Of a stretch of DNA of 64,000 bases, positions 1 to 48,079 are shown in pieces. Under the pieces are notes generated by a model. That model had not been told where the DNA came from. It saw only the letters and a program-made list of their open reading frames with translations, and did no database searches. Origin of the DNA: Tubulanus polymorphus (lineage: Eukaryota > Animalia > Nemertea); contig NC_134031.1 in assembly GCF_964204645.1 (NCBI RefSeq), positions 16,169,807-16,233,806 of the forward strand, written 5' to 3'. Positions within the stretch are counted from its first letter, which is position 1, and each line of letters opens with the position of its first letter. The position numbers and the translations under genes are program-made.

Positions 1-1030
1 CCGCACGCTTTGATTGCCATTTTAACCAGGTCGGTTCATCTACTTCTAAAACTAGATCTTCTATCACATCAATTTGGTCCCGTAAGCAATTTTTCAAGTC
101 GTCCATGTGAACATGGAAAGGAATGTCTGAAAAATAAAAATACCGATATAGCCTAAATAGTTAAAACCCCTAAATCAGTCTGTTAACCCTTTCAGTGCGT
201 CTACACTGCAGTGCAGTGTAATGATCGGTGATGTATTTTTGCTGGTACACCGCACTACGGTGTATTGATGTAATGAGTAATTAGTTTTTATCTCTACTGA
301 AAGATGGCAGCACCTGTCAAACATAGTGAAATACTAGTAACTAATGATACACCGCGCCGCCGTGTAGACGCATTGTAGTGGTATACCCGTTATTCAAACG
401 AATAGGGTGGAATTTTTTAAAATTTTCAAATTATCTCCAGCACTATCGGCTATTGGTAAGTCAGCACTGAAAGGGTTAATCTATCCGTGAATTTGCCCTG
501 ACAATCATACAATCGAATTGGTATTGCATATGAGTCGGATTGGTACCGAAAAACCTGCGCAGTGAGGCAGGATTTTGTGCCGCGGCCGAGTCTTGCGATG
601 CCATGGTTCGAATTCCTGCCAAGGGAGGAGGGGAAAGTGGCCACCCTGATCTACACTGCAGTGCGGTGTATTAATTGGTGATTGACTTCGGTGATACAAT
701 ATTGATTCAATATCAGTTATCGCTATCAAAAGATGGCAGCACCTGTCAAACATTGCGAAATACAAGTACCTTAGTAACTAACACAGCACCACAGTGAATA
801 TGCTCAATATCGGTATTCCCATTATACAAGGCACTAAGGGGTAAGAATTAGTTAGCACTGAAATGGTAAAGTGACCCCTCAAATTCATTTCCAAGAACCT
901 AACCGTCTGGATTTCTTCAAATATATTGCCGCCAGGATTCAATCCATGAACCCTAAAGGATGACACATTAGGGAACCACTCAAAACCTTACACACGCTAC
1001 AGGTTTTTTCTGCTTACCTAATAAAATCAT
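1..1030 (-). CDS. 5' part of an inverted paralogue of the zinc-finger-array gene. Coding exons 1030-1018 and 126-<1 give MILL/DIPFHVHMDDLKNCLRDQIDVIEDLVLEVDEPTWLKWQSKRA...; the gene continues beyond the window edge.
   Basis: On the minus strand, ATG ATT TTA TTA G|GTAAGC (phase 1) joins the acceptor TTTTTCAG at 127-129. The spliced peptide aligns with the exons at 6073-6088 and 6176-6307, including an identical VDEPTWLKWQ. Not in the ORF track. Confidence 0.8.
183..479. mobile_element. piggyBac-like MITE with TTAA flanks and TIR CCCTTTCAGTGC...GCACTGAAAGGG; related fragments at about 648-870 and about 14750-14790
   Basis: TTAACCCTTTCAGTGC at 183 and GCACTGAAAGGGTTAA ending at 479; the internal sequence recurs elsewhere in the window. 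Confidence 0.7.
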
Positions 1031-2301: not shown

Positions 2302-4225
2302 TTAAGTCGATGTGTTCGATGAAGCTGTTTTGGTTATAAAGTTCGAGTTCACGAAACACATATCAGCCTGCCATCGATACGTTTCACCTTTACCGCGAAA
2401 TGGCACTTTGTTGAGCATATGAAATGGTTCGAATCCCATTTCTGACATCTTGCGAATGTCAGCTGCGTATATTCCCATGTTCATTACCATGTTACCGAAT
2501 ACATGGTACTCGACCAGATATTGCTTGACTCTATTCAGCATACCGTCTGCTAGAATATTGTGTAGAACGGCGAATTCATTACCTTCGATATCGATCTTTA
2601 AAAAGTCGATTACCATCTGAAAGCAGGGAGAATTATCATTAACGATCATTATTACGCAGGCATAAAATCTGTACGCTCAGAATACCGTTCCATTAATTCG
2701 TTTGTATGTAATAAATGAATGGTCCACGATTTGACGAATAGATGTCTCAAATTCATTGTCTTGAAATCGTAATTCAAGCCGCTTATCAAAAAAATATTTC
2801 GTTCGCTTACATTTTCTCGTTTGATCATTTTTAGGATCGACTTCAAAGTGCGAATTTTCCATATTTGATCGGTTCTCACGTATTCATCTTTTCTCGGAAC
2901 GAAACTGTCCGAGTCGGCACCACCAATACCGAGGTCGTAAAACCAGACTTTTTTCGAATGTTTGTGATCAGGTTTTCCCATACTGAAATATGAGGTCATA
3001 TTCAATATACTCGATTCTATGATTATTGCGAGATGCACTCAATCGATCATGTCTACACACACCTGGGGTCAAACGCATACACTTCGCAACCGTATTTCTC
3101 CATCGCATCATCGAACTGCCACAAATTACCAATTCTACAAGAGGTACCATTCGCGTGAGAAGTAATCTAATGAAATCTATTCCCAGTTAATAACAAGACT
3201 TTAAAATATTCGAAAAGAGAATTTCAATTACTTTCAGCACATGAAATATAGCATTTACTGTACTAATGTCTATTTATTAATAGATAATTATATTAGTATA
3301 TTAATACATAATAAGTACCCATCACAATGAATGAAGAAATGTCTCAAAAGTTTATTTAGATATTTCTAATGTTTGAATAAACCTTTGAGACATTTCTTCA
3401 TTTTTGCGGGATTTTACTATATCGATTTATCGCGGATATCGTGAGCTACAACTGATTCATTCGGGATTTGCTGTAGTTTGGAGCAATTTTCAAGTTGATA
3501 AATTCGCGTCGCAAAAAAGACACTTGCCCAAACGAAAGCGCTAAGCAGCCAGGTTTCGGAGAGAATGGTTCATCGTGGCAGCCGAACCAGCTTCCTTCTT
3601 CTTCGCGTATACCATATAAAACGCGTTTCTTACATTTGTAAGTTGGACCCTTTTTCAAATATCTGAAGACATACATGATGTGTAAATTGATCTCTTCGCG
3701 GGTCCTCATTGTTTCACGGGCATTCATTTTTGAAAAAACAATCGAATACTTTACTCACGCTCCTATCAATGCTTCACCTTCCCACCACTTTAAGTTCAAT
3801 TGACTTTGAGAAACTATTTAAAAAATCCACCAAAATGATCATTGTTCACATCAACATAGGCTTATTCAACTCACTAATGAAATCACTATAAATATATACT
3901 CATTCACATCCAAATGGATCCGACGTATTTATCAACAGAATTCTAGGTCTTTATTCGTTCGAAAGCATACTTACTTACATAACGCTACGGAATGAAACTT
4001 ACCCTCCGTTTTAGATGCATTGTTATCCAGGCCTCTGACGAAAACGTAACGAAGTGTCGACTGTTTATTGTATAATTGCTGTTCAAAGGTAATATAGATA
4101 TAGATTAAAAATTCACCGGGATTGAGTATAAAATTATTCCATTAACCTACACATACGTGTATGAGGATGATTACGACAACGACCAAACCGATCACCGCAG
4201 CAATATTCTGATACGAACGATTCAT
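2302..4225 (-). CDS. METTL24-like (Methyltransf_22/FkbM-type) methyltransferase, multi-exon, with an N-terminal signal anchor
   Basis: Exon peptides: MNRSYQNIAAVIGLVVVVIILIH; ..YGIREEEGSWFGCHDEPFSPKPGCLALSFG; ..YGCEVYAFDP; ..FYDLGIGGADSD..WKIRTLKSILKM; ..IDFLKIDIEGNEF..KQYLVEYH. Some internal exon boundaries are uncertain. Confidence 0.8.
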
Positions 4226-5515
4226 CGTTTTTTACGAACACGCTACTGTTCAGGTTTTCCTTCTTCAGTTATGTTAACCGTAAATCTGAACACAATATAT
4301 ACCAGCTATTAACCGGTGACAATTGAAGACATCTGCCATGGATCAACCATATTGCACGAGAGTCCTCGAATATTATTATATTAGTTCGACGCGGAGGCTC
4401 GGGGGGTAATAAACTTCAGCAGTTTATTGCAATATCAATGTTATAACTATTGGGTTTTTTCTTCATGCTACATATTGGAAAAATGAACCCTATACCAACA
4501 TCAAACGGTTTTTTCGTTAAGGGTCCCCCGAGTCGGGGGCCCGACTGATCATCTTCGAGTCGGATCGAGCTGTATCACACTGTGAACTGGGTCTGTTTCT
4601 TTCAAAGTTTTAAAGTCCTTATGTGGATCAACATTAATACCTTAGTTCATCTACAATCGCCGAAACTCATGAATGGCGGGGGACCCCTAGTTTGACCGCC
4701 CGGGTTCCGGCCCCGAGAGTCGACATTCTGTCGAGCTAAACGAAACCGAATGTCTGTTAGTCGGAAATATATTCCGGAAATAGTTCGAAAATCAAGCGCA
4801 TTCGGTTATTAGTTCCGACCACTAGTCGACTAAATACGAAAACCGAATTTGGCCCTGGTTGACGCTAAATTATGAACCATTGACGCTTGTTGACGCTGCC
4901 GGTGACGATATTTTCTGGCACCATTCTTGATCCAACGCATTTGCAGCGGCTTAATTTATAAGTTATTATAAATACAACACGAAGAATTCTCTTCACCTTA
5001 TATGCTCTCTATTCATTAAAATGCCGATAAATGAAGTCTATCCCGTTACGCGATTTACACCTTACCTAAGTCGAATCCTTGTTTTAGCGTAATGTGTGGC
5101 GCTGCTGTGTTATTGGCTTGGGTAAGTCGTGTTTTATTATCATGATTCATCTTTCCTTATATTGCACTTCGTGATTATTTTCTTAACACTCCCGTGAAGC
5201 CCACAGACTTTAGAAGTTCTTAATTACTTGCAAATTGAGTAATCATGTAAAGCGTGCAACGGAATCGCTGCCATAAACATCCAAAATCATCACTACTACT
5301 TATCATCACACTCACTTGCCAGAGCAGGCCCCAGTGCCAGGGTTGCAGGCATCGACGTACCATAAGAAGAACCACTCAAGACGATTTTTTATTCAAGTCC
5401 GTATAAACTCAGATAGTTCTGCTGGGCACTATTACCTAATATGTGGTTAGGTAGTATTTGAATCGAATTGCCAATTTAATGACTAAAGTAAACGTGAATT
5501 TTCTGTGATTGAAGA

Positions 5516-5528
5516 AGCCGCCATTTTG
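5516..5528 (+). promoter_or_regulatory. YY1-like motif (GCCGCCATTTTG) in the divergent promoter/5' region between the METTL24-like gene and the zinc-finger gene
   Basis: Matches the CGCCATNTT consensus; function untested. Confidence 0.3.
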
Positions 5529-6072
5529 TTTTTTTATCTATTGACTACTACACCTGCAATCACAATAGGCACAAATCGCTGCAGGCGCGGTGGGCAGATA
5601 AATGAATGATTTGTTCCAAATTGCTTGAATAAATGCCTAGTATAATTCCCTATCTAGTCATTGTACTTGTGCCAGTGAAACCCGCAGTGCTGCACAACTT
5701 TGAATGCACAGTTAACTCAAGGCTTACAACACGCCACGTCCAAAAATAGAGCAACCTTCATTCTTGTTTCTTTCAATGCAACCACAGTTCACAGATTTTT
5801 GTCTGCAATCGAAACTATTTTCATCAAATAAACTAATTGAATATTGTTTATGACCGTTTGGAAACAACCTTAGACTAGATTTCGCTGGCCTAGAGTGTCG
5901 ATGCTATCAGGGTCGTATTCCTGTCCCTAGAGGGCTACCTCGGTTGTTGAGCTATACTCCATCCATATGCTTTTTATCCATTGATCAATAAGCCAAGTTG
6001 TTTCTTTCAGTATGAATTAGCCTGCTGTTATCTGATTTTGAGTGTCCATCATAATTGAATGTGTGCTTAAAA

Positions 6073-7771
6073 ATGATGCTTATGCTCGGTAGGTTTTGAG
6101 AAATGACCCTGAAATAATCAAGATGCCTTATAGCCTAACGTTAAATGATGGAACGTTTTCATCTTGTTTGTCTAGATATCCCGTTTCAAGTTTCTCAGGA
6201 AGACTTACAACGATGTTTAGAGTCGAATTTGGAGCTGATCGAGAATATAGTTATAGATGTCGATGAGCCGACGTGGTTGAAATGGCAGGATCGCAGACAA
6301 TCCCGATGTACGTAGTCGCTATACTCTCGTGTAGCTATGGGGGAAAACAGGACCCATAGAAGTCGGCCAAATATAACTCTGAAGTTACTGAACATTAAAA
6401 GTTCCTCACCTAAAGATTATAATGGTTCTAAACGATCTTAGAGATTTGTTTACTTTGTCCTGTTTTCTTCATTCAGTTTTAACTTTTAATTCGGATAGCA
6501 GTTATCTGGCCATTACGATCACATGGTCTCGTTAAGAGAAGAAATATTGGTTGGATTTTGATTAAATCCTTGTAGTAATGCTAAGAGTGAGTGACCTACC
6601 TAGTGCGTTGAATCATGGCTTTAGATAAGCCTAACCCAGTACATTAAATTCAAATGCCATGATCAGGTTCTTACAGATTACAGAAATCAAAAGAATTCAG
6701 GATTTATTTTTCCCCGCAGAAAAATGAAAGAAATCTCACTGATATTGGGGAAAATCAGGGAATTTGAATTTTGGTGTCTTGTTATCGCCAGTGACAAGTA
6801 AGAGCATAAGGAAACAGTCCGCACTGAGAATATTTTATAAATTGATCAGGGAATTTATGGTCTACCAAGTATAGCCTATGGGTGAAGGAAAATAAGGGAA
6901 ATATCAGGGTAATTTGGATTCCCTGTTCTTTTTGTTTGAGCCGTGTACCCGGTATATCCCTCAGTGCATTTTGCATTTTGTTATAGACCAGAACTCGGAT
7001 TCAAACTGAATATCAAATTTTTTCCAGATATGCAGCAGAATGCCATCTCAGATGACCAGATGGGAATGGCTGTTGCCGATGACGACGACGATATATCCTT
7101 CATCAAAGAGGAAAATATCGGTCACGACCAGTACAGCGCCGAAAGCCTACCCTACAACTCGAATCAGAACGCATTCCCGTACGGCAGCACCTCCGGTCAA
7201 ATGATCAGATCTCCGTATAAACAATTCCAGCATCGAAAACGTCGACGCCAGCCGTCGGCGAGCGCGACGAAAAACTCAACCGCGTCTCAAAAACGCCGCA
7301 ATCAAAATTTGTCTCGACAAGCGAAATATAATCCGCAACAGGCGCCGTACGCGTTGCCGCACGACCCAGCGGGCTCGTGGAGCGCGACGGAGGCCGGGGT
7401 ACGCGTACCTCCGTTACACGGGGGCGACACGAGCGGTCAGGGGACGTTTCAAACGGAGCAGACGGCGGTGAAACCGGAGCCGTCGTCGAGTGACGGTCTG
7501 GGCGGCGCCGACGATTACGGCAATTACGACGCGGATGCGCGGCAATCGTACGGGGAAAACCCGGGCGACGATTTCGCGGAAGGCGGCGGCAGGAATTACA
7601 CGGCGGATACGAGCGGTATGAACGACGACGGGTTGTATTTAAAGCGCGAGGACACTGACGGACAGTTGGAACAACGCCAGATGGATCCTCACGCTGAAGA
7701 TGCCACAAACGACGATAGTTTTTTCGCGGTCGATGATTCAATGAATTCTTCCGATGCTCAATCTGGTTCTG
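6073..7771 (+). CDS. Common 5' exons of the zinc-finger-array gene: 6073-6088, 6176-6307 and 7028-7771 (conserved N-terminal module, then an acidic/low-complexity linker with a basic NLS-like HRKRRRQ)
   Basis: ATG ATG CTT ATG CTC G|GTAGG; TCTAG|AT ATC CCG...CGA T|GTACGT; TTTCCAG|AT ATG CAG...GGT TCT G|GTAAG. All junctions are phase 1 and the frame stays open; the paralogue at 1-1030 supports the first two exons. Confidence 0.85.
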
Positions 7772-8952
7772 GTAAGTTTCACGTGAACAATGTCTGGAAT
7801 GTGGTGGTAGCGTGATCTCTTCTTGTTTTCGATGAAAAACAGTTTTCATTTATTTCGTGAAGTGGTCATTGGATGTGTATTATAGAACCCCACAACGTAG
7901 AAGATTTAAAGTGAAAATCTGTTGTACGATATTATGGCTAGAAAGAATGCTTCAGCCATTTCAGAGATTTATTTGAAATGAATATGAACTGCAATGTTAC
8001 CGGTACATTAAAGAAAAGTTGTTCAAGAGGTTACCCGAAACAAGGTCACCCGAAAAGTATCAGTGTAATAGATTTTCAATGTAAATCTTCAATATTGTGG
8101 GTCTTTATGTACAAAACATAGACTGCAACAAGTCTTCGATTGATTTAGTCATTGGATTGTATTCTGCAACCAAAATGATGTATTAGAAGTAAATTTTTCT
8201 CGAAACAAGAAGAAATCAACTTTACAGGTTGAGAATATGAAGATTTAGGGTATCATGTATCAAACTTTGATTTCATGTTATTGTAGAGTAGGAACGGGCA
8301 ATTTTGATAATTATTGGCCTGGTTTCAGTTTAACCGGAGATTTGCTGAAAAAAATTATGCGACGATAGAAGATCGCCGTGATGTAGAAGCTGTGAAAGAA
8401 ATTGATATTTATTGTTTTTCTTTGTCGCAAACTGTATAAGTGTTGTTTTTTGTCACATCTACCGTAGATTAGAATTGTTATTTTGATGAAGCACCGCAAT
8501 TGTCAATTATTCGTAAATGAGGGAGGGGGGTTAGAAAAGAACTGCTGAGTATGATAAGTGGGTAAAAGGCATGTATATCATATAGAGGTATTTTCAAATA
8601 CTTGAATACTGTTTTGCTGAATTCGACAACAAGGCTTTTACTGTGTGACTTAATCCCGAATATGGATGGAGCATTACCGATGCATCATGGTATCGATACA
8701 GAGGATGACTTTAGGTAGAGGATAGTTTTGGTTTTGGTTCTGGATACTGTCTGTTCAACTGGTGGATGAAGCATCTATTTTATGATATGGAACAGGATTT
8801 CCAATTATGGATCGGAAACGTCTTCGTCAATCTAGAACTTACGCCTTTTTGAGTCCATGAGGAATATGACGACACTACCGCCGCGACCGACCCAGTGACT
8901 GGATGGAAGAAACTTTCGTATTGACTGACTCCGATTTTTCTGTCATTTTCAG

Positions 8953-9227
8953 ACTGGTTTGTGACGACGCGACGTAGCGGAATCGGGCAGTCGCAGCGCC
9001 GAAACAGTCGGTCGATTCCGTCTGCCGGAGGTGGCGTCTGTCACACCTGCGGTCGTACGTTCAAATATCGCGGCGATTTAAGGCGTCACATGCGAATACA
9101 CCTGGGAATCCGACCGTACGTTTGTGACGTGTGCGGACAGTCGTTCATTCAGATCGGAACGCTCTATTTACACGCGCAACGCATTCACAATTTAATTCTG
9201 CAGAGAAAACGAAACTCCTCGATTTAA
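8953..9227 (+). CDS. Alternative terminal exon ZF-A (twin C2H2)
   Basis: TTTTCAG acceptor, phase 1; CHTC..HMRIH-LGIRPY-CDVC..HAQRIH; own stop. Confidence 0.85.
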
Positions 9228-9368
9228 TTTCTTTCCGTCGTTCGCACGCGATCGAAACATGAGGCCGGAATCTCGCGGGTTTCGGAGGATTACGAGTCCA
9301 TGGCCGTAGAGATTCTAACACATTCTAAGCTGTCATTTGAACGTCTTTTTTTCTCCCCCTCTTTTCAG

Positions 9369-9625
9369 GGATGCGTCTCTCGACACTCGATGCGGATTCC
9401 GCGAATCCGAAGGAAGCCTATTGTCCCATCTGTCACAGATGTTTTGCCGGCGCGTACCGTCTTAAGATCCACATGCGCGTGCACGTCGGCGTCAAGCCGT
9501 TTCTGTGTAGATTTTGCCAATACAAGTTTTCCGATTACTCGAACTGTAAACGTCACATCAGTCGCAAACACACGTCCGATAAACAGGAGATTCTACAAGC
9601 AGTTGTTCACGTTTACAAACTTTAA
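9369..9625 (+). CDS. Alternative terminal exon ZF-B (twin C2H2)
   Basis: CTTTTCAG|GG ATG, phase 1; CPIC..HMRVH-VGVKPF-CRFC..HISRKH; AATAAA at 10065. Confidence 0.85.
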
Positions 9626-10263
9626 CTCTGCTATATTTCGTTTTCGCTGCAGTTAAACAGGATTTCCCCCCGTAATCGAATGTGATACGAATCCCTCGCT
9701 ATGATTTATAGAAAAGAAGTCACTTTATCCGTGATGTTTTGCGCCTAGGTTTTTTCGTCGCATGGTCACTCGCGTATAACGCCAGTTCGCGGAGTATCGT
9801 ATATGAATTTGATTTGTTCCAGCTAGGGCCTTAATGTTTCATTTACGGAAGATTTTTTTTACTGTTCTATGTAGTGGAACCTCGTTATAAAGACCTCAGA
9901 TATAACGATTTTTTGGTTATAACGAACTAGAATTACATCCCAAATAGTGGATTTCAATGATTTTCTTACTCGATCTACCGAACTATCGGTTCTAGACTTT
10001 CTGGTCCCCGGAAGTTTGTTGTAACGAGGTTCCTCTATAGTATATGATTTGTAGTTACGTGTTCAATAAAAGAATGTATTAATCGAAACGCGTTCTAAGT
10101 CTGAAGTTACTTTTTCGATTATGAGATAAAAGCATTTTGAGGTTTTAAGAGTAATTTTTATTCAGTGTCAGTATTGAGCTGGTTGCGGGTCTAGGGTCGG
10201 AGAATTCTTGTGATACATCATTCTAAGTCGTAATTTCAACAATATTTCTCCCGATCTTTTCAG

Positions 10264-10526
10264 GGTTGCGTCGCGTGCCAGCTCAAACTGCTGCCGGTTC
10301 GGCTAATTCGAAGGAAGTTTTTTGTCCCATTTGTCGCAAATGTTTGGCCAGTACGTACGGACTTAAAATCCACATGCGCGTGCACATCGGCGCTAAGCCG
10401 TTCTGGTGTCGGTTTTGCCAACGCAAGTTCGCCGACTATACGAACTGTAAACGTCACATCAGCCGTCGGCATACAAACGATAAACAGGAGATTCTACGAG
10501 CGATTATTCGCGTTGACAAATTGTAA
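10264..10526 (+). CDS. Alternative terminal exon ZF-C (twin C2H2)
   Basis: TTTTCAG|GG TTG, phase 1; paralogue of ZF-B and ZF-D. Confidence 0.85.
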
Positions 10527-11007
10527 CTTCGATTTTCCAAAAAACGATTTCGCTGCATTTGTGAAGGGGATTTTTCTGAAATTAAAATACCTCTCTGTTA
10601 TCTATAAAACGAGGTCATTTTATCGGTGATATTTTGACCCTAGGATTTGCTACGTATCTTCACTTGCTGCCAAGCGCTAGTTAATGGAATATTGGATGTA
10701 AATTTAGTTTGTTCCAGCTAGAACCTTTAAGTTTCACGTTTCATTTGCACGAAATTTTGTAGTGTGTTTATATAGAATATGATTTATTATTTGTACCCAT
10801 GTGTTCGATGAAAAATATATTAATGAAAAAATTCTAAGTCTTCATTTCACTTTCTGTTTTGAGATAAAATTGCAGATGAGATGTTAGGATAAAAACTTTC
10901 AGAAGAGAGTTCGCATAGTCAGTATTGAGCTGGTAAAGGGTCTAATTTCGGGGAATTCTTACTCATTCCAAGCTGTCGTTTGAACTATATTTTCCCCATC
11001 TTTTCAG

Positions 11008-11270
11008 GGTTGCGTCGCGTGTCAGCTCAAACTGCTGCGGGCTCCGCTAATTCGAAGGAAGTTTATTGTCCCATCTGTCGCAAATGTTTGGCTACTTCGA
11101 AGGGACTTAAGATTCACATGCGCGTGCACATCGGCGCTAAGCCATTCTGGTGTCGATTTTGCCAGCGCAAGTTTTCAGATTATACGAATTGTAAACGTCA
11201 CATCAGCCGTAGGCATACGAACGATAAACAGGAGATTCTACGAGGAGTTATTCGCATCGACAAATTGTAA
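11008..11270 (+). CDS. Alternative terminal exon ZF-D (twin C2H2)
   Basis: TTTTCAG|GG TTG, phase 1; recent duplicate of ZF-C. Confidence 0.85.
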
Positions 11271-11463
11271 CCAGTTCTGGAACTGTTTCTGGCGGATGTT
11301 AAAATGTGGCGAATATCCACGACAGCATCACCCAGCAGGAGTAAATCTTAAATCTTAGTATGAATTGTATCTGTGGGCAGGTCTTATTTCTTCGGAGCTA
11401 TGAGTTTGTACTGTTAGAATTTCCCAATACTGTTAAGCTAAGCTCAGGTCAACTTTAGTAGAC

Positions 11464-11578
11464 CTGGACCCAGTTCCACAGTTGTGTGTTAAGGTTCAAT
11501 TCTGAGTTAACTCATTGAAAATGAAATAACTTTAACTCAAGAGTTAACTCTCACTCACAACTGTGGAACTGGGTCCTG
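11464..11578. mobile_element. Short palindromic MITE (CTGGACCCAGTTCCACAGTT...AACTGTGGAACTGGGTCC); second copy at about 50838-50950
   Basis: Inverted repeat with two dispersed copies in the window. Confidence 0.65.
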
Positions 11579-12576
11579 GTCATCTCGTCGACTTTTTCAT
11601 CGAGAACCTTTTCGACATTAGTGTGCTTACGACCGTGACGACTTGATCGCACGAATCGCAAAGTCAGAACAAATTCTGTTCTTGATGACCCGATCAGATT
11701 GCCGTAGCCAATCGGCAATGAGGTACCCGTCACATTACCTTTAGATTCTGCGATGATCGACTCGTAGTCGACGTGAATGCTCTTATGACGTCGCGACAAA
11801 TGAATCGTCAATCAGCGGTCAGGTGTTTACTACCGTTGTTCTAACCATGAGATGATCGTGTCATTAATCAACCTGATCTTAGCTTTAGTTGTTTCATTTG
11901 ATTACGTGGAAACTCATTCTATTCTTATCGTGATGCAGAACATTAATATGGGCTTCCGAGCTGTTTTTCTAGTGATACTACGGAATAGTTGCTGCGACAA
12001 AGTTTTAAATTGTATTTCGAGTGATTTATATCTTTTTAAATCTAAATGGATTATTTTATTAGAGAGTAGATTGAGGTGACTGTTGGTCTGTTAAATGTTT
12101 CAGAAAGTGACTTATCAGTTGATTTCAGCAGTAAAAAGCTGTTCTAACCAAGAAAACTTTGTAACCACGTAATACCATTCATGAGGCCTTTTTTCTAATT
12201 ACTTAGAGTACGGATCCGCTGACCAGAATTCAACATTCTATTAAAAAAAATCGTTTCATCGATTTCACGTGTTTCATATTATTTTTTTCAAAATTTTCGT
12301 GATATTCGATTCCCATCTTTTGAATTCAATTCCACATAATTTTCAAACCTTCCACGATTTTATGTGGAATATACTGGAATAACATAATAAAAAAATTCAT
12401 TTTCTTCCTGTTTTCTTATGTCTCAAAAAGCAGGTGATAGAAAATTCTTTCTTTATCTTTTACATTCGGCCTGCCATTTTTTTTTCCGTATAAAATCCGT
12501 ACTCCGCGTAATCGCAAAAAAAGGCCTCAATTCTCAAGTCTCCCAATTCTCCTACAGTCGCTTCTTCTACTTTCAG

Positions 12577-12854
12577 TGTGTGCTTCGAACGCGGTTAAAT
12601 CGACGTCGCCTTCAGACGGGAAACGTTGCGATCGTCCGGCGAAATCTTATCCGTGCAATCTTTGCGACAAAATTCTCACGTCCGACTTAGGCTGGAAAAT
12701 CCACACGAACGCGCACGTCGGCGCGCGGCCGTTCTGGTGTAAATATTGCCAGCGTAAATTCTCGACGCGCAGCAATTGCCTGCGACACATCGGTTCTCAA
12801 CACGGGCAGCACGCGGTCACCGACGGCGTGATCGAAGTGAATTTCATTCATTGA
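12577..12854 (+). CDS. Alternative terminal exon ZF-E (twin C2H2)
   Basis: TTTCAG|TG TGT, phase 1; CNLC..HTNAH-VGARPF-CKYC..HIGSQH. Confidence 0.85.
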
Positions 12855-13165
12855 CGCGAGGAGGAAAATGCGTAAAACTGAGGCGCGAATGTGACCGACG
12901 ATAGAGTTAAAACGTGATTTAAGATAAAGTTTTTTTCAGTATTCTTATTTCGAATTGATAAATGCTGTCACCTGATTTTGATTTGTGGAATGGATATGCG
13001 CGGCGTGGCAGAGATTAGTTATTATGTGAAGCAAACAAATTACTGTTGTTTTACGTATTACCGTCATTTTTTTCATTCGCGATGTTGACGCATGACAGCG
13101 AACCCGGGAACTTAGGAATTTAAGGTGATTAAAAACAGTAATCCACAATTTTCGACTACTTTCAG

Positions 13166-13512
13166 CGTACACGCCGTGGCAAGCGAAACAAGAACAGACT
13201 CAAGACTTCAACGCGACATCAACGTCGTCGCAATCGGCGTGTAGATATTGCGGTCAGATGATCGCCGACAGCAAGCTGAAAGCGCACGAGAAATCGCATC
13301 AGCGAACGGTGTTCGAATGCCCGACCTGCGGCCGACGACTGACCTCCAGCAACGGCCTGCAGATTCATATGCGCACGCACAACGGTCACAAACCGTATCG
13401 ATGTAAATTCTGCAAGCAATTGTTCACCGACCGCAGCAACTGTAAAAAGCACATCTACCGACAACACTGTCAGGACAAGGACATCGTCGATAAGGGTTTC
13501 GACGTAGTTTAG
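13166..13512 (+). CDS. Alternative terminal exon ZF-F (short atypical finger plus twin C2H2)
   Basis: TTTCAG|CG TAC, phase 1; CRYC..HEKSH, CPTC..HMRTH-NGHKPY-CKFC..HIYRQH. Confidence 0.85.
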
Positions 13513-14157
13513 ATTTTGAGAACATTGTTAGATTATGTTAGAGTCTTTGTAGGCATATTTAGCCAGTTTCATCGTATATATATATTATATATATATATAT
13601 TTTTCTATAGAGTAGAGGATTAATCAGATTTTTGTTTATAGAATAATGTATTCTTGATGTAATAGTTGTAGATCGTGCTTTCAGATATACGTCTATCTTA
13701 GCGGATTCAGATATGTAAAGAAGTGTATTTTGTTGTTTAATGAATATGGTTAACCTTGCCTAACTAGATGCATTTAACCGGGCTTTCTTTTATTCGGCTG
13801 ATTACAAAAGTTTCAACATTAGCTTGGTATTTTCAAAAATGTTAGTAGCACGTTTTTCACTTTTCGTCATAAACTTGGACGAAATTTTACCCTCTTTCAA
13901 TTGCACTAATTTAAGAATTGCAAGGTTTGCTTTATACAGATATTCACAAGATTTGAGCTTTTCACCCCCGTTTCACTGGCACAAAATGACTGCGGCACGG
14001 AAGTCGTCATTATATGTCGACTCCGGAAAAATCAACACTAGGACGAAATGGTGCAGTTGTGTTATTGGTCGGACCCAAGTGCTCTGTCTCTATCGGTATA
14101 TGAACATGTCTTACTTACTACGTGTACTATCTAAATTATCTATTACCCTAATTTCAG

Positions 14158-14549
14158 GGTCATTGTGGCAACAGAAGAATAAAGAGCGGGCACTCGGCGG
14201 TCCGGACCAAGCGACGGATCATTCCGGCGGAACGCGGGCGCCGCCGGATGTAGACATTAGCGCGATGAAAATGTGTAAATTCTGCTACTTGATGATCGCG
14301 CCGGACGAGTTCAAAAATCACGAGGCGATGCATAAAAGCGTTTTCACGTGTCCGGTGTGCAATAAATCGATGACGACGAACAAAGGTCTCGAAATTCACA
14401 TGCGTTGCCACAACGGCGAAAAGCCGTTCCAGTGTAAGTTCTGCAGCGCGCAGTTCTCCGATTTGAGCAATTGTAAACGCCACATACGCAATCAACACTC
14501 GGCGGATAGCGAAATCATCAAAGCGGGTTTTACGATTCTGAAGTTGTGA
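14158..14549 (+). CDS. Alternative terminal exon ZF-G (short atypical finger plus twin C2H2)
   Basis: ATTTCAG|GG TCA, phase 1; CKFC..HEAMH, CPVC..HMRCH-NGEKPF-CKFC..HIRNQH. Confidence 0.85.
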
Positions 14550-16538
14550 TGTGCACGTATAGAGCTGTTTTTTAGGGAATTTGAACGTTATCGGATCTTG
14601 GTGCATGCTATCTCCGCTGATTGTATAATTCTCACTACTTTCAGGCACTAGTGACAAATTTTGTCTCTTGGAACCAATTCTCAGTAGAGAGAGAGTTAAC
14701 ATAGTTAAATATCCATAAAAGTGGTGTACTAGCAAAATCCATCACTGATTCGTACACCGCACTGCAGTGTAGACGCACTGAAAGGGTTAACAAAAAATAT
14801 TATACCTTAACTGATAGCTGTAGTGTGCACTAGGCTCCAGTATGCGATGCTGCTGCTGCAGTCCTGGAAAATATTCGCACAAGGGAAAATTCATAGTCTT
14901 CATGAAGTTGTGCATAGGTTATACAAAATTACTAATAAAGAATTTTAGAACTAATAAGTCCATTCTAACTTGGCCCTTACCAGGAACAGACCAATTTAGA
15001 ACGACCTAAATCGGACTCGTGTATTGACATTTTGAATCGGCCGTTAGGACTGGTCCACTTTATGTGCAACACTGTGATATTAACTGGAAATAAGAGCATA
15101 TTATCTTTTCGCGCACACGGAGATGGTCCATTCTTAAATTTAGAAGGGACCTAGGTCGGTCATTTTGGTTGGTCTTAATTGGTCTGTTCCTAAAAATGAA
15201 AATATCCAGTTTAACACGGAGTTTTTCCCTGTTTACTACACAAAAGCCAAATGTGGCTTATGCATACTTTATGAATCCGATATGTAAATTGAAGATGTTC
15301 CTGTGTATGACAAGTTATTGCTAAAACAATCAAATTATTCAATGTGCTCATATTTGTTAGAATGAAAAATTGACTGGCGCCTTCGTAATGTGTACCGGGG
15401 TACATTGAATTGATATGCATGAATTGATTTTCTAGTTGTTTGTCTAAATGAATTGAAGGCTGTATTGTTTATCTCATAAAACGTCATGGATTTTGTTCGG
15501 TTTCTGGTTATTCTAACCATGGCTCCTTGTTTCTTAACATCTTTAAAAACGCAATAGAGAGAGTTAAGAGGTTTATTTATTTGATTTCGTTTTCTGTATC
15601 GGAATTTGATATTTTTGAAAATGTGGAAATGATTTCATTTCGATTATGATTTTAAGGATTTTTTAGAGAAATATGATTTTACACTACATATTTTTTGATA
15701 CGCTTGAATTATTTTTGGGATGATGACTTAAATGTGATTGCAACTGAAGTGTAACAAAAAATGTAAAAAGCTACGTAATACCTTGTATGCAGTAGCCATA
15801 GAACCATGGACGTATAAGCTAGTTTTAACCATGAAAGAACTAAAAACATTGAGTTTTCTGCTATTGTTATTCTGTTGACCTTGGTAAAATCGTTATTGGT
15901 TATTGCTCATCAGAAATAGTCAAGCACATCGAGACAGCTTGTTTGAATAAAACATACTTTCATGATAAGTAGCAATAGCAACTACTCTAGGTATCGGTCA
16001 CATATCATTATTGTTGCTGTCATCACTTTGGTCTGAACCTGGTCGTCTGCCATAGTTTAGTCAATAAAATATTCATATCGTTGTATATTAGTACGAATGT
16101 ATGTACAAAGTCTCAGAAAAATAAATACCGCATTTATTGTTAAGAATATATATATATATATACGTATTCTGTTGTCATATTTCTGATTGGAGGTCGCTCA
16201 GTCGTACACAGTCGTTGGGAATCCCTGAGACTTGTCGCATTTATTTGGTATGAAGGTTTTATCAACACAAATGGACAGATATAATCATCAACTGAGGTGT
16301 AAACTAGTTCCAAAGAAACTAGTTGCAAAGAGAAAGGGGGTCTCATTTGCAATTGCCACCGCAATTAATTGATGATATCATACATGTATGAATACAGTAA
16401 ACATTTCTTGCCCGGATCTCGTGGGACCAATAACTTCTAGGTACCGGTGCGTGCGTTCCGGGGCAGTCGGAACAGGCGTGGGTCATTAATGAGAAATGAA
16501 AACTTTGTGACATCGAAGCAAGCGACTCCGGGGTAAAC

Positions 16539-16841
16539 CACAGGCTCTCGTATTTGAAGTTTGGGGGTGAACTGCAGCTTTGATCACCCAGTACCCTAGT
16601 CAGTAACCTGTCTGTGGTTTACTTTCACGATCGGATATTTTCACAAACCACATAATAGGCCCATCCGATTGGTATAAGCCCATCCGATTATAAAAAGCTT
16701 ACCACCCGGGCTTACCACCAATGATTAGGTAACTAACTAACTACCAGTAACCCTGGTATACCATATAAAAAGAATAGTATCAAGGGTTCTGGATGATCTA
16801 AGCTACAGTCCATCCCCAAACTTCAAATACAAGCCCCTGTG
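16539..16841. mobile_element. MITE (CACAGG..CTCGTATTTGAAGTTTGGGGGTGAACT...; inverted end at about 16800-16841) carrying a nested dispersed repeat. A shorter copy lies at about 28094-28229; the nested repeat also occurs at about 60820-61020, 61550-61610 and 62340-62410.
   Basis: Long TIRs and multiple dispersed copies visible in the window. Confidence 0.6.
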
Positions 16842-16944
16842 GGGTAAACGGAGTCTACCGTATAATCATACCTTTTCCGACAAAAATTATATGTAATTTT
16901 ATATAGTCTGTATAAGTAAAGGATTTTAATTGTTATTCTTTCAG

Positions 16945-17171
16945 GTATGGGCAGTGCGTTGAAAGCGGCGTCCTACAATTGTCAGCCACAATTGGTTCTC
17001 ATCTGTCCAGTATGCAATAAAATCTTCCCGAAAAAGTACACGGCCAACTACAAAAAACACTTGCGCATTCACACCGGCGAGAAACCGTACAGCTGTGACG
17101 TCTGCGGCCGAAAGTTCAAAGACGCCAGTAACCGTAACGTGCATCTCAAACGCATGCATAACGCGTGTTAG
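16945..17171 (+). CDS. Alternative terminal exon ZF-H (twin C2H2 with canonical HTGEKPY linker)
   Basis: TTCTTTCAG|GT ATG, phase 1; CPVC..HLRIH-TGEKPY-CDVC..HLKRMH. Confidence 0.85.
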
Positions 17172-18674: not shown

Positions 18675-20694
18675 ATGAGAATAACAGAGTCAGCAGTTTT
18701 CCGAGTGTGCGTCGCATGTCTTTTTATTTCAAATGGAATTAGAGTTATCACTGCTCAGGTTGTTGAAGGTAATCTATGAAAATATCGATGTATGTCCTAA
18801 TCGGCAAACATTCGGTACAAAAATCTCATCCTTTCAAATTGAAGTTATTATTTTCAATATCTGTATGATATCATCTCATATTCTCGTATCGTTGCCAGGG
18901 GTAAACTTAGCACTGAATCGACCGGCCAAGATGAGCACGGAATATTTTCCGGGACAAGCGTACGGAAGTGCCGCTAAAGCGGTCGATGGCAACACGAACG
19001 GATATTTCGTCTCGGGAGACACTTGCACGCAAACAACGATGTCCAACGCTGGGAATCACTGGTGGATGGTCGACCTGAAGAGAAAATACCTGGTCAGAAA
19101 TGTCTATGTTGCCAACAGGGCGGATTGTTGTGGTAAGAACAACCTCATTCCACCTCTTCGTAGTATGTGGCTGCGTCTAGATATATCTTAAATCTAAAAG
19201 CCACTCTGTTTGACCTTAAAATAGGGATAGCCCCTCTTATTCATTGATTGGTGAATTTGATTTGAATTAACTTGATTTGATGTGCCTTTCAAACCCACCA
19301 CACGTGCCGTAGCAAAACAGGGGGTTTGCTTTTGAAATCAGAAATCGAACAGGGTACAAATGCGTGATTGGCCGTCGAATTTACAGAATTTCGGTTCGGG
19401 TTCATGTAAACTATGATCATCCAGCCTGAACCGGCAAGTGACTGACTGGGGTTAATTTATACCAAAAAATGTTAAATATATTTAACTATATTATCATACT
19501 AGTTTTATGTAAGAACATTACAATCAAAGATAAACGCTCAAATCGAGTGCTGGTGTGTAAATATTGTTAAAATCTATTTTCTTTTTCTACATTTTTTGTA
19601 ACTGTTTTACATGAATATTTCTGTATCCTCATCAATGTATCACTGTAATGTGGTTTGAGTTGTTAATAAAGTCCAAGTTCAAGCCTAAATTTATTGGGCC
19701 TACATCGAGATTTGGAAGTAGGCCATTTTTAACGAAAATGACAGTTATTATTATCAAAATCAAAGACAGTTTTGGGTTAAGTATACGTAAATCTGTGTTT
19801 GGTCTTTGTATTTGTAGCATCACGACTGAGGGACTTTGACATACTCGTCACATTAGATAGACCGGTCCCGGAGTACGCGCTGGACGTCACGCCTGATAAC
19901 ACTTGTATTCACAAAACTGGATCTATGATGTTGGGCGAGAAGAGGAACTTCACGTGTGCGTCGCCGATAGTCGGAAATTTCGTGATCATCACCAAACCTG
20001 GTAACTCGGAAGCGTTGACATTGTGTGAAGTGCAAGTTTACGGTTCGAAAGCTCCCGATCAATTCAATGGTAAGTAAGCATCGACCACAGCAGGCAAATA
20101 AGTAGGTTATTATCACGTAAAATCACGTACTAAACAACTCTTTTTTATAACCTTAAAAGTTGGAAATTAGTTTGTGACCAGATCCACGGCCATCTGTTGT
20201 AGCTCGGTCAGATAAGGCGTGATGCTGTTGCATCCACTATCAGTGTTCAGTGATAAGTAGGTTCGCGTCCTAATGGCTGCTTACAGTGTGCGGGCAACTC
20301 TTCAAAGGTAGTCCCGTCGTGAGGTTAAATGAATAATCCAATAGGGTTAGTCTAGGGAAACCAAGATCCAAGCGACGTAAAAACCAAAACAAACAAACAA
20401 ACAAACAAACAAATTGTATAATTCTGCATTTCAAGTAGTTCTCTATTTTTTCATTTTGAGGTAGATTTCAATTTCCGTAAGCAAGGTAACAGAAATCACC
20501 TGGTGGAGAAATACGAAACAGTAAAGAAGCGATCGGATATCGAATGTGCTCGAATTTGTCGACCCGACGACAAATGCGAGGGTTTCGTTTACAACGGTAT
20601 CGTCTGCGATCTATACACAGTGAATACGAGTCCATTTTTTGCGCCGACGAATTATTACAAGAAACTGCAGCCGATGCCAGACGAGCGGGTCTGA
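18675..20694 (+). CDS. Secreted F-type lectin (fucolectin/FTP domain) with a C-terminal PAN/apple domain; exons 18675-18768, 18899-19132, 19818-20069, 20465-20694
   Basis: Signal-peptide-like exon 1; NLALNRPAKMST..AAKAVDGN..CTQT..WWMVDL..NRADCC/ASRL..LTLCEVQVYG; PAN motif ECARICRPDDKCEGFVYNGIVCDLY; all junctions GT-AG, phase 1. Confidence 0.85.
20187..20413 (+). mobile_element. tRNA-derived SINE in intron 3 of the lectin gene
   Basis: A-box-like TAGCTCGGTCAGATAAGGCG, B-box-like GGTTCGCGTCC, 3' tail GACGTAAAAACCAAAAC(AAAC)n. Confidence 0.65.
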
Positions 20695-41513: not shown

Positions 41514-42515
41514 TTACAAATGTTTCCTCGTTAAGGCGAATAACGCCTTAACCTCGTCTCTATACTTGTCGAACGAAAAAGCGTATATCACGAAGTTTAA
41601 CGCGTAGTTAAAGCAGCTAACGGTCGTCGCGAATGAATTCAAAACCCAGAGAAAATGAGTGACGTCTGGATGTGACCAGCCGTCAAACGCACGCGCCAAA
41701 TGATGGAAAAGTGCAGCCGTGATGTTGTAAGGTGTAATGAATACAAAATAAACCGTTGATACCGCTAACAGATTTATTATACATTTCCTTTCATTTTTGT
41801 CTGATCCAGTTGTTTGCTTTGATTCACTCCACGCGTTTTGGCTTCGCCTGACGCCGATAATGATGAAAATATTCAGCGTCAAAACGGCGATCCACGGAAT
41901 CGTGTGGTTGTACACGTGGCCCTTGAGTCCTAAGGGGACGCGTAACCACACCGGAAGAATTCGACTGTTCCACTCGCAATGAGGGATTTCAGTTTGCGCC
42001 CCGCGTATGATCCCCATCACGGCGGGTAATTCTACGTTTGTGACGAGAGCTACGACGACCAAAACGACGAGGAATCGTTTACGACGGCTCGTAGTCATCG
42101 ACGTGCGACGAAACGGCGCCCAGACGCTGACGCACCGTTCAACCGAAAACGACAGGATGATCCATGCCGATAGCCAAGCGGCGCCCCACCACAAATAGAC
42201 GGTCGTTTTGCAGAGGAAGTTCGTGACGAGAATATGAACGGGCGTGCCGACGACGATCAAAAGATGGTCGAGCCACCATAGAATACCCATAGAGAACAGA
42301 ACGCAGGTATCGGTGCACGCTAACAGAAATAGGTACTGCACGCTGGCGCTGTCGATTCTCCTCCAAAGACGAGGGAAAACGATCAACGAAACGACATTAC
42401 CGAAAATACCGATTACAACCGTAACCGGGTGCACGTATTTGATACAGATTATAAGACCGAATTCAATGGCTGAATATCGGCTGCGCTGATGAAAACTGCT
42501 TCCGTTGCCGAACAT
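41514..42515 (-). CDS. Intronless class A (rhodopsin-like) GPCR, peptide-receptor-like (FMRFamide-receptor-like group), orphan
   Basis: Seven hydrophobic segments; GIFGNVVS (TM1), LFLLACTD (TM2), SVERC (DRY site), TM6 proline, NYALNFVIY (TM7). Confidence 0.9.
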   Translation of the reverse strand: MFGNGSSFHQRSRYSAIEFGLIICIKYVHPVTVVIGIFGNVVSLIVFPRLWRRIDSASVQYLFLLACTDTCVLFSMGILWWLDHLLIVVGTPVHILVTNFLCKTTVYLWWGAAWLSAWIILSFSVERCVSVWAPFRRTSMTTSRRKRFLVVLVVVALVTNVELPAVMGIIRGAQTEIPHCEWNSRILPVWLRVPLGLKGHVYNHTIPWIAVLTLNIFIIIGVRRSQNAWSESKQTTGSDKNERKCIINLLAVSTVYFVFITPYNITAALFHHLARAFDGWSHPDVTHFLWVLNSFATTVSCFNYALNFVIYAFSFDKYRDEVKALFALTRKHL

Positions 42516-44921
42516 GATCAATTATTGAGATACGGTACTCGCTCAGAAAAAATATTTCGGGACATTAACGCGACGTTGTATAACGATTATGTATCAGGAT
42601 GCGCTTTGTCTAATAACATGAAACTGCGAGGCATAATTGACTAATCGGCGCTAATTACAACGAAGAGACTCTCTTGCCTACAAGCAAACGAAGTCACGCG
42701 ACGACGGTACGAAATAACCAAATGGAAATAGCTGGAAACGCTGAAAAGTGAATACTGACCGTAATGATGATCAGACGAAATGTATGAAATCCCAGAGCCC
42801 CTCGTACCATGTTATATAATGTATATAGTAACGACTAATGTAAACGATTTCAAAGAGGCTAGTATAAGATTTGATTGAAGTTTTGCAATAAGAATAAATG
42901 CTCAATCTTATATTTGTGTTGGACACCATATCATCCATGCATCCATGCATCCATCCATGCTAATCATTTTTAAAAATTCGACTTTTAGACTTTTATAGTA
43001 CGTCGAATTTTTAAGGCCAGGGTAAAGCGTGATGCGCAAGCTGTCCAAGTCGTTATTTGCGTTATTCAGTGATGGCTAGTTAGTAGTCAAGCTTCCAGAT
43101 CCTATCTTTCAGAATGATACTGCACATTGTGAGGATTTTATGAAATTATCAGGGTTTGATGGTAACATACATGGCTTCAATTTCAGAAGCGGTACCCATA
43201 CGCTCATCTGGGCCCGTTTTTAAAGATGGCCGCCATTTGTCCAAGCGTATGCTGAATACGATATAAATCACCGATTTCAGCAATCTTTAGTGTCTATTTT
43301 ATGCTTTTGAGAACATTAAAAAACTGGGTTTTCGGACTCGAAAATTCAGCATAAAAACCTGTAGCAGCCATTTTTCAAGATGGCGGCCATTTTTGATTAA
43401 TAACTCAGTCACATTTCCACAATCTTGTTGTTAATATATATAATATAGGCTTCACAACACAAACATTCGCAGGCTCTAAAAATTTCGATTGTTCGACGTA
43501 GAAAATTGTGGACGTTGAGCCATCTAGTGTGTACGGGTAGTTAATGAAGTAGAATTTTCAATTAGTAGAAGGCGACGTGCTGTCGAAGCGTTGCTGCCGA
43601 ATGGACGCAAAAACAGAAACCTGTCAGTATTTGTCGATTAGGCTGTCATTTTTTATCGTTTGTAGTTGTAGCCCCTATATGAACAAAAATATATCCTCAA
43701 CGGGGGAATCCGATATATCATTGTTTTTACATTATAAATTCGTATATGTATTAAAGTTGGTGCTGTTACATTTGGAAAATAATGGAAATATATATATATA
43801 TATATAATGTAAGAAGCCGGTGATTATGTTATGTTATACTCAAGAGTTACACAAGAAAAAATCAACAAAAACAACGAGAAATAATGAAAAATATCACGAC
43901 AAAAAGTAGAAATATCATGAACACGTTATCTATCTATATCTCAAAGTGAGGAGTAATGTAAACGATGCTTTTTTTTCCTCGAAGAGAAATAATTTGTTGA
44001 AGAACCTTATGAAAATTTATGAAAATGTTAGTGTTGTACTACATGGAATATGCGATGAATCTATAGGCAGCTACATGTATATGTAACTTGCTGATGTTAA
44101 TTTACTGTAATATAGTGAACGTACAGATTTAAGATGAAAGGGATGCATTCCAAATGACATTGGATTTTAAAACTGTACTTTTAAGTTTTTCAGATCGCTA
44201 TCAAATGCTACGATGGATTTGGTCAAGTACAAGAACACATAGAATGGACATGAGATGTTGAATCGACAGAATTGTTCATCTATCAATTTTGATTACTCTA
44301 GGGTTTTTATGTACCTTATAAAGACCGAAATATTCTTACAATGACATACATATAAACAGACACCTATGATAGACTATATTGTATAATATAGAAAAGCTAG
44401 TTCCTTATGGGTCCATGAATCTAAGGGGGAGCTGAAGCGTCCTGGGGACACCTTTGTAAAAACAATATTTTTTCGAAGTTCTCAATCAGAGTAATTTCAG
44501 TCGGAATAAACTAAGTTGTCTTATGTAGTTAAAAGTGATTGAGGAAATGAAAAATGTCCCCAGGATTCTTCCGTACGAATCAGATATATTCAAGTTATTT
44601 TTGTTCCAACTTGACTATATTTTTGTCTCAAATATTATCTAAAAAGTAGTCACCTTGGTATGAAAATCTGCAGTCATATGGAGGTGTGTATGCATTTTAC
44701 CAAAAATTCATATTATGAATTTTTGATTTTACATACATTTCAAATAGTCAAATTCAATTTTTAATCCGAGTTTCCTCTTTGAGTTTCCAATCTTTTAAGC
44801 TTTTGAAAATTGCTGCAATGACAAAAACAATATTGCAGCATTCGGCAATCGAAATATCCACCTGTCGTATAAATTTTAGGTATAGAATACATATTTTACA
44901 TCCGTGTATACGTTTTTTCAG

Positions 44922-47172: not shown

Positions 47173-48079
47173 AGGCTGGAACTGAGCACAGGAATTCCAG
47201 CCAATTAGAGACCGAATATACATAGTACCGTTAGCATCATTAGTTTGATGTCACAAACATTCAATTTCAAGTAGTTTCAAACGCAAACCGAACCCAGGAA
47301 GAAAGACACTCTAAATATTTGGATGGATATATGAAAGCTGTGGGTACTGGAGTGTGTAATGGGTAGTGTAGTGTGATCTGTGTGCATTTGTGGCCAGGAC
47401 ACAGATCACATTCACCAAGAACCTTAGTGTCTGATGTACCACAGTGGTTACACAGGATCGTAGAGGAACGTAGATACACTGTGGAGACAGCCACACTGCC
47501 AGGACTGGGTGAAAGATCACATTGTTCAATGGGGTTTGGTCCAGGACTCGCGAGATTTTCAACAACACGGAAGTAACGTGTAATAAATGATGACTTGAAT
47601 TGCATGACTTCCTACCACACCCCTCATTATTGTTGGAAAACTAAACGTTCGGCACTGATTAAAAATTAGTAATAACATTTTAGAAATGGCCAGAATTTTA
47701 ACTTAGGTTCTATCTCATTTCTATTTTACAATTGCGATTGGTATGATTTTTTTTAAACGGCCGTTAAGGCTTCGTGTTTCGGCTGCAATTCACTGCAAAT
47801 AGTTACGCAACTATGCACATTTCAGTGTTTTTGGCAGCTGTACACTCAATCGGCACCGTTCGTGACTAGCTTCGCTGCGGAATTATCATTAATTAACATC
47901 GCCATATCACATCATCAACTTATATTGTGCCTTAAAACCCTAACAGCCGAAATAATTGAAATGCACACACGATTTCTATCATTGAAAATTGAGAGAGTGG
48001 CCATGTTTGTGTTTGCTGCTTCGCGTAAATCCCGCGCGGTGGCGCAACCGCGCGGAGTGGGGATCGTGGAAAACCGACT

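Follow-up and report, generated by a model that had tools for sequence, protein, structure and literature searches.

A small number of N-terminal accessory domains, namely KRAB, SCAN, ZAD, BTB and FiNZ, define the C2H2 zinc-finger families; each of them is tied to a particular lineage and has helped to show how its family works. KRAB docks a transcriptional co-regulator in tetrapod zinc-finger proteins, and FiNZ is suspected of doing likewise in carp-family fish. Both of these domains are acidic, and FiNZ, as described by Wells et al., is in addition short and like no other recognised domain (PMC10547256). The TTK-type BTB proteins lola, mod(mdg4) and fruitless multimerise, carry one or two fingers and are specific to arthropods (PMC11426971). 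Here we describe a gene in a 64,000-nucleotide stretch of genomic DNA (hereafter the window) in which an unrelated N-terminal domain of ~45 residues stands in the place that BTB holds in lola. The host, Tubulanus polymorphus, is a palaeonemertean ribbon worm.

Like KRAB and FiNZ, the nemertean domain is short, acidic and N-terminal, is encoded by small exons of its own upstream of C2H2 finger exons, and marks an apparently lineage-restricted, tandemly expanded zinc-finger family; with FiNZ it also shares the lack of similarity to known domains. It differs from both in being predicted as a folded three-helix unit and in occurring with a homeodomain and with alternative twin-finger last exons rather than with one long finger exon, and it has no sequence likeness to KRAB, whose Pfam profile is unmatched at E <= 10. 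What it has in common with the TTK-type BTB genes of Drosophila (lola, fruitless and mod(mdg4)) is a layout in which constant 5' exons carrying the N-terminal domain are followed by alternative C2H2 ends, together with an occasional pairing with another class of DNA-binding domain. By contrast, BTB is an alpha/beta domain of ~95-120 residues that forms dimers or hexamers, whereas the nemertean domain is, by prediction, all-helical, and lola also trans-splices, whereas the nemertean isoforms look cis-spliced. Because TTK-type BTBs are confined to arthropods (PMC11426971) and the host here is a nemertean, the natural reading is that the lola-like design is convergent, as a preliminary description of this DNA had proposed.

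Exon structure and alternative ends of the plus-strand gene

The gene is represented in RefSeq by XP_074654966.1 (hereafter P0012), a Tubulanus polymorphus protein annotated as "uncharacterized", and its parts are as follows.

5367 to 6088, plus strand: exon 1, covered by the unbroken contig 24 of sequencing run X4; a 5' UTR of at least 706 nt and 16 coding bases
6089 to 6175, plus strand: intron 1, 87 nt, GT..AG, phase 1; X4 joint 6087/6088 to 6175/6176
6176 to 6307, plus strand: exon 2, 132 nt, symmetric 1-1; domain core DIPFQV...VDEPTWLKWQDRRQSR, with three predicted helices
6308 to 7027, plus strand: intron 2, 720 nt, GT..AG, phase 1; joint 6307 to 7028
7028 to 7771, plus strand: constant exon 3, 744 nt, symmetric 1-1, ending in phase 1; placed by an RNA contig and by tblastn of P0012 residues 51-298
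8953 to 17171, plus strand: alternative last exons with two C2H2 fingers each; placed by RNA joints, tblastn and Pfam C2H2

Contigs from four public runs of the same organism were mapped onto positions 5000-10999 of the window, where run X1 is unbroken and behaves as DNA and runs X2 to X4 contain exonic parts only. Contig 24 of X4 (1598 letters) spans ~5367-6087, 6175-6307 and 7028-7771 through GT..AG joints, and no competing joint into 6176 or 7028 occurs among the run contigs over 5000-10999. The start codon, an ATG at 6073 with an in-frame TAA stop upstream at 6052-6054, opens the peptide MMLML and the first base of an Asp codon (coding part of exon 1, 6073-6088), and intron 1 cuts the domain just past this hydrophobic N-terminal tetra- or pentapeptide. 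Exon 2 translates as DIPFQVSQEDLQRCLESNLELIENIVIDVDEPTWLKWQDRRQSR plus one base, which is identical to residues 6-49 of P0012, and the first 49 residues of P0012 equal the spliced peptide exactly. The preliminary description had held that two small exons absent from the list of open reading frames splice together to encode the domain; contig 24, its GT..AG joints and the N-terminus of P0012 agree in bearing this out, and the plus-strand peptide reads as it was first given, save that it had been stopped at ...WQDRR and the exon runs on with QSR plus one base. Exon 3 codes for a linker that is acidic, of low complexity and free of Pfam domains, and all three coding introns lie in phase 1.

The joints in the RNA contig indicate that the mRNA consists of a long 5' UTR followed by an open reading frame from 6073, with no distant coding exon. 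Over 3800-6070 no upstream ORF longer than 51 aa was found, and a search for a BTB-coding exon elsewhere in the transcript, which covered the RNA contig from 5367, the upstream ORFs and P0012, returned none; nor do the RNA contigs contain joints that skip the domain or bring in a distant BTB exon. The initial view that no BTB, KRAB, SCAN or ZAD coding sequence accompanies this gene is thus upheld by the mRNA, whose reading frame begins at 6073 with no coding exon before it, as well as by the lack of any Pfam signal for these domains. As a separate observation, intron 2 contains a high-copy repeat at ~6690-6790 at which many contigs stop; the depth of the DNA run is 1728 over 6600-6799 as against ~36 nearby, and nearly all reads carry one extra T after 6768.

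Downstream of exon 3, RNA joints lead from ~7770/7771 to three alternative acceptors at ~8953, 9369 and 10264. The last exon of RefSeq isoform X2 is 13162-13512, and a loose contig end matches it. Homology places further finger exons at ~11067-11270, 12648-12854, 14256-14549 and 16995-17171, and the first 10 kb downstream hold seven finger pairs. A contig of the DNA run X1 joins 10997 back to 10254 and shows 28 differences across 10254-10527, a signal that may stem from a diverged tandem duplicate or from an alternative haplotype of finger cassettes 3 and 4.

A head-to-head paralogue and a genome-wide family of domain exons

A second copy of the domain lies on the opposite strand at the edge of the window.

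1018 to 1030, minus strand: paralogue exon 1, coding part; MILL and the first base of Asp (gene model P0014 starts MILLDIPFHV)
1 to 126, minus strand: paralogue domain-core exon, DIPFHV...VDEPTWLKWQSKRA, cut off by the window edge; a homeodomain lies at the end of the gene

The intron between them extends from a donor GT at 1017-1016 to an acceptor AG at 128-127, and the exon at 126-1 translates, as far as the window edge, as DIPFHVHMDDLKNCLRDQIDVIEDLVLEVDEPTWLKWQSKRA. That this copy is real, as first claimed, is confirmed by the identical N-terminus of P0014, and its sequence, too, reads as first given. Both copies have a phase-1 intron inside the same Asp codon and carry VDEPTWLKWQ unchanged, so the equality of intron position and phase and the identity of this motif, noted at the outset, stand on the sequence. 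P0014, a RefSeq-derived model of this neighbouring gene, matches the Pfam Homeodomain at E = 8e-20, and its gene is on the same 21.6-Mb chromosome as the plus-strand gene. In a six-frame search of the whole genome the two window copies match each other at E = 2.6e-11.

The two paralogues are arranged head to head (1-1030, minus; 5367-6088, plus), with start codons ~5 kb apart. Another head-to-head pair of family members is found at C7:17708859 (minus) and C7:17711049 (plus), ~2 kb apart, and the domain exons of that pair are near-identical. Between the divergent transcription-factor genes of the window, at 2302-3038 on the minus strand, lie two adjoining same-frame ORFs with one stop codon between them. 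The second matches the FkbM methyltransferase domain PF05050 at E = 8e-7, and the pair represents either a pseudogene or a gene broken by an intron.

Searching the 268-Mb genome in six frames with the exon-2 peptide alone gave 42 matches, and at E <= 0.01 a profile built from 21 members recovered 50 exons, which are spread over ten chromosome-scale sequences, with ~17 in a tandem cluster at C8:11.41-11.64 Mb. The alignment is almost free of gaps across 42 columns and shows a regular hydrophobic pattern behind a hydrophobic M-h-h-h start, giving a conserved unit of 42-47 residues (~45) with ~13 conserved hydrophobic positions. Little or no variation is seen at Trp39, Trp42 and Arg46 and very little at Cys19 and Asp35, and the signature can be written M-h-h-h-[DE] ... 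V-x-E-x-x-L-[KR]-x-C-L-x-x-[HN]-h-[DE]-h-L-D-[DE]-h-V-h-x-[AV]-D-[DE]-x-T-W-x-[RK]-W-x-x-x-R. Two gene subtypes occur: in the first, to which both window genes belong, a phase-1 intron follows codon 4 or 5, and in the second the start codon lies within the domain exon (MLLLEGVEVHV..., C8 cluster). Paralogue pairs have pS values of 0.72-0.98, at or near saturation, as against pN values of 0.16-0.32, and dN/dS is ~0.12 where dS is unsaturated. Judged from these substitution rates, the domain is under purifying selection at the protein level, in line with the initial proposal. Apart from the N-terminal domain and the fingers, the paralogues share almost nothing. An origin from a transposon was considered and dropped, as the 720-aa ORF that holds the weakest genome match turned out to belong to the family, albeit as a divergent member, and to have fingers of its own.

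To place the family among organisms, we ran an exhaustive HMMER profile search over 1.84 billion representatives of ~15 billion proteins at E <= 0.001. It returned 27 matches, 26 of them real; the remaining one, P0025, was rejected as a low-complexity repeat artefact (5 stretches, from ENA). Twenty matches were looked up, and 18 proved to be T. polymorphus RefSeq proteins by name, all "uncharacterized", the others being P0014 and P0003. The latter comes from assembly GCA_044232415.1, where a contig of 1066 nt carries it as an ORF of 78 aa. Its exon is 80% identical in DNA to the closest T. polymorphus copy, its flanks do not align, and it keeps the acceptor in the same place and phase (..cag/AT ATT CC.., the slash marking the exon boundary), a combination from which we conclude that a second, related organism has the domain. 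A protein homologue search with the family alignment, aimed at short fragments in other species, found P0003 again and nothing else. The family therefore looks lineage-restricted, as had been suggested, insofar as a 42-position HMM and the proteomes in the searched library can tell.

Fold, position and candidate role of the domain

AlphaFold2, supplied with alignments of paralogues, models the domain as three helices (P0012 residues 13-22, 24-33 and 36-55) with mean pLDDT values of 88 and 85 and with the first 10 residues less certain; the input was shallow, comprising 17-21 paralogues almost all from one species. The model does not support the strand-helix-strand-helix pattern first suggested. 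The core up to Trp42 has a mean net charge of -5.3 and a pI of 4.3, and the next 11-14 residues form a tail with a net charge of +2.6. The prediction is thus of a small three-helix domain, strongly acidic and with a basic tail behind it; the charge of its core argues against DNA binding.

No search for a described domain gave a match. Pfam hmmscan of 21 members at E <= 10 found no family at all, including BTB (PF00651), KRAB (PF01352), SCAN (PF02023) and zf-AD (PF07776); PDB sequence profiles yielded chance matches, none better than E = 0.35; Foldseek against the PDB found nothing at E <= 0.001; and the ESM Atlas returned by shape just partial helix matches to bacterial proteins and by features nothing. 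VIA-align against 48,161 chains reached a best Z of 3.4, within noise for a small helical model, and its top 50 contain no BTB, SCAN or homeodomain entry. ZAD of insects and SCAN of vertebrates resemble the nemertean domain in being N-terminal, lineage-specific and C2H2-associated, and SCAN is also helical; however, SCAN has ~84 residues in five helices, and ZAD holds zinc through four cysteines, whereas the alignment contains a single near-invariant one, at position 19. These results make it highly improbable that the domain is a known one diverged past recognition, such as a BTB fragment, KRAB, SCAN or a Myb- or homeodomain-like three-helix unit. Its short length and fast evolution would suit such a relic, and by eye the T-W-x-R-W-x-x-x-R of helix 3 is faintly like the homeodomain W-F-x-N-R-R; one member, a window peptide, also gave Pfam SSXT at E = 0.15, a match that was absent on rescanning the 21 members. 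Yet the sequence, PDB and fold searches are all negative, the domain is acidic and not basic, and a BTB fold is impossible for 45 all-helical residues. For the motif, unrecognised at first reading, no description was found in Pfam, the PDB or the literature searched, and all family members found are annotated as uncharacterised. The kind to which it belongs is familiar: it is N-terminal, lies in its own exon ahead of C2H2 fingers and characterises an expanded, restricted family, the features of the lineage-specific accessory domains of zinc-finger transcription factors, which are a functional and not a homologous class. The individual domain is undescribed.

The position of the domain is nearly constant, its start falling within residues 1-9 in 22 of the 26 real library matches. 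It lies further in, or is incomplete, in P0003 (an ORF fragment, 22-63), P0021 (24-64), P0024 and P0026 (45-79) and the truncated P0027. Such a placement would also suit an N-terminal signal, in which the conserved M-L-L-L-[DE] start is the functional part and serves as a degron, a localisation signal or a modification or stability motif; residues 1-4 are hydrophobic in nearly all members, and the basic tail resembles a nuclear localisation signal. Against this, 42 columns are conserved, the invariant Trp39, Trp42 and Arg46 are far from the N-terminus, a helical fold is predicted with confidence, and the core lies 20-45 residues inside P0021, P0024 and P0026, leaving this reading scarcely likelier than that of a diverged known domain.

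At the other end of the protein, a Pfam scan places C2H2 fingers toward the C-terminus in 17 of 20 RefSeq members, and one scanned family member ends in a homeodomain. P0002, P0004 and P0023, as well as the separately scanned P0007, have no recognised Pfam domain; P0023 (XP_074656892.1) extends over residues ~200-385 without fingers or a Pfam match, and this C-terminal part may be a third kind of end on the same front domain. In the genome itself we examined the adjacent 10 kb downstream of 12 loci, with the antisense strand as a control, and found C2H2 motifs on the sense strand at all 12 and on the antisense strand at 0. Most motifs form pairs with a spacing of 84 nt, and several loci contain two or more pairs set apart from one another. 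That every locus carries sense-strand motifs indicates that the combination of front domain and twin-finger cassettes recurs across the family, and the genome search foreseen in the preliminary description thus yields both a family of ~50 exons and C2H2 motifs behind each of the 12 sampled. As to the RefSeq models of the C8 cluster, P0001, P0008, P0010 and P0027 are 814-1577 aa long, the longer ones have many finger pairs, and P0001 and P0027 repeat their linker. Some of these models look chimeric, and the long ones probably string alternative last exons or neighbouring genes together rather than representing true poly-ZNF proteins.

Four properties point to a module that binds proteins rather than nucleic acids. 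The domain is a folded, acidic unit at the N-terminus; it is the sole conserved part of the protein that does not bind DNA; a disordered linker ties it to the interchangeable DNA-binding ends; and its partners include DNA-binding domains of two classes. Some kind of protein-interaction role is accordingly quite likely. The best explanation, which we hold with moderate confidence, is that this undescribed domain gives a common regulatory output to swappable DNA-binding ends. Under the mechanism we prefer, by analogy with KRAB, a shared transcriptional co-regulator would dock on helix 3, which is conserved, acidic and Trp-bearing (D-[DE]-x-T-W-x-R-W), and the front domain, itself presumably not binding DNA, would thereby confer one regulatory output on whichever end it is joined to. 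Two observations sit less easily with this explanation: ~13 conserved hydrophobic positions within 45 residues would suit dimerisation equally well, and the four RefSeq members named above lack a recognised DNA-binding domain.

The choice of a cofactor dock over a self-association domain is a tentative one. Self-association would produce homo- or hetero-oligomers among the ~50 members, in the manner of BTB (lola), ZAD and SCAN, and would join different finger pairs on DNA. In its favour, the domain stands where BTB would be in a gene built like lola, with twin-finger ends as alternatives; TTK-type BTBs likewise multimerise and accompany one or two fingers (PMC11426971); hydrophobic residues are plentiful for a unit of this size (45 residues); and the weak best rows of the fold search include the D domains of beta-TrCP (Z 3.0) and Cdc4 (Z 2.6), both within noise. 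The monomer alone is nevertheless predicted confidently, and at a net charge of -5 the packing of like copies would carry an electrostatic penalty unless the basic tail joins in. A homodimer prediction with two copies of residues 1-56 scored 0.01, a value that weighs neither for nor against binding. On balance we consider self-association unlikely, though a serious contender, and retain the docking of a shared co-regulator as the preferred mechanism.

A wider reading joins these strands. It holds that an accessory domain invented in nemerteans independently yielded both lola-type loci, with a single front joined by splicing to many twin-finger ends or even to a homeodomain one, and a KRAB/FiNZ-like tandem cluster, with a novel fold and a novel cofactor interface, and we regard it as a plausible account that is close to evenly balanced. 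If it is true, the family would be a natural experiment on the repeated evolution of a 'common effector plus swappable DNA reader' in animals. The domain is in any case a new candidate accessory domain from Nemertea, a phylum whose transcription factors have hardly been studied. Should it recruit a cofactor or oligomerise, the lola design would have arisen at least twice with unrelated front domains, and the 45-residue module would be compact enough to be open to experiment.

Other genes in the window

Retrotransposon-like ORF fragments occur on both strands over 45233-49311 (for example 48080-49311, plus strand), and a 292-aa piece of them has no Pfam match at E <= 0.001. An intronless ORF of 335 aa at 41514-42521 on the minus strand encodes a rhodopsin-family GPCR (PF00001, E = 1e-13), and fucolectin-like F5/8 type C (discoidin) exons are present at 18733-20077 on the plus strand (PF22633, E = 4e-11). 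A plus-strand tandem array at 24743-56000 has at least 5 units, each pairing a signal-peptide and PAN/apple exon (PF00024) with a GON-domain exon (PF08685) behind it, of which the following are examples.

24743/26078, plus strand: PAN/apple and GON unit
29568/30723, plus strand: PAN/apple and GON unit
36683/39231, plus strand: PAN/apple and GON unit
50364/51902, plus strand: PAN/apple and GON unit
53787/55320, plus strand: PAN/apple and GON unit
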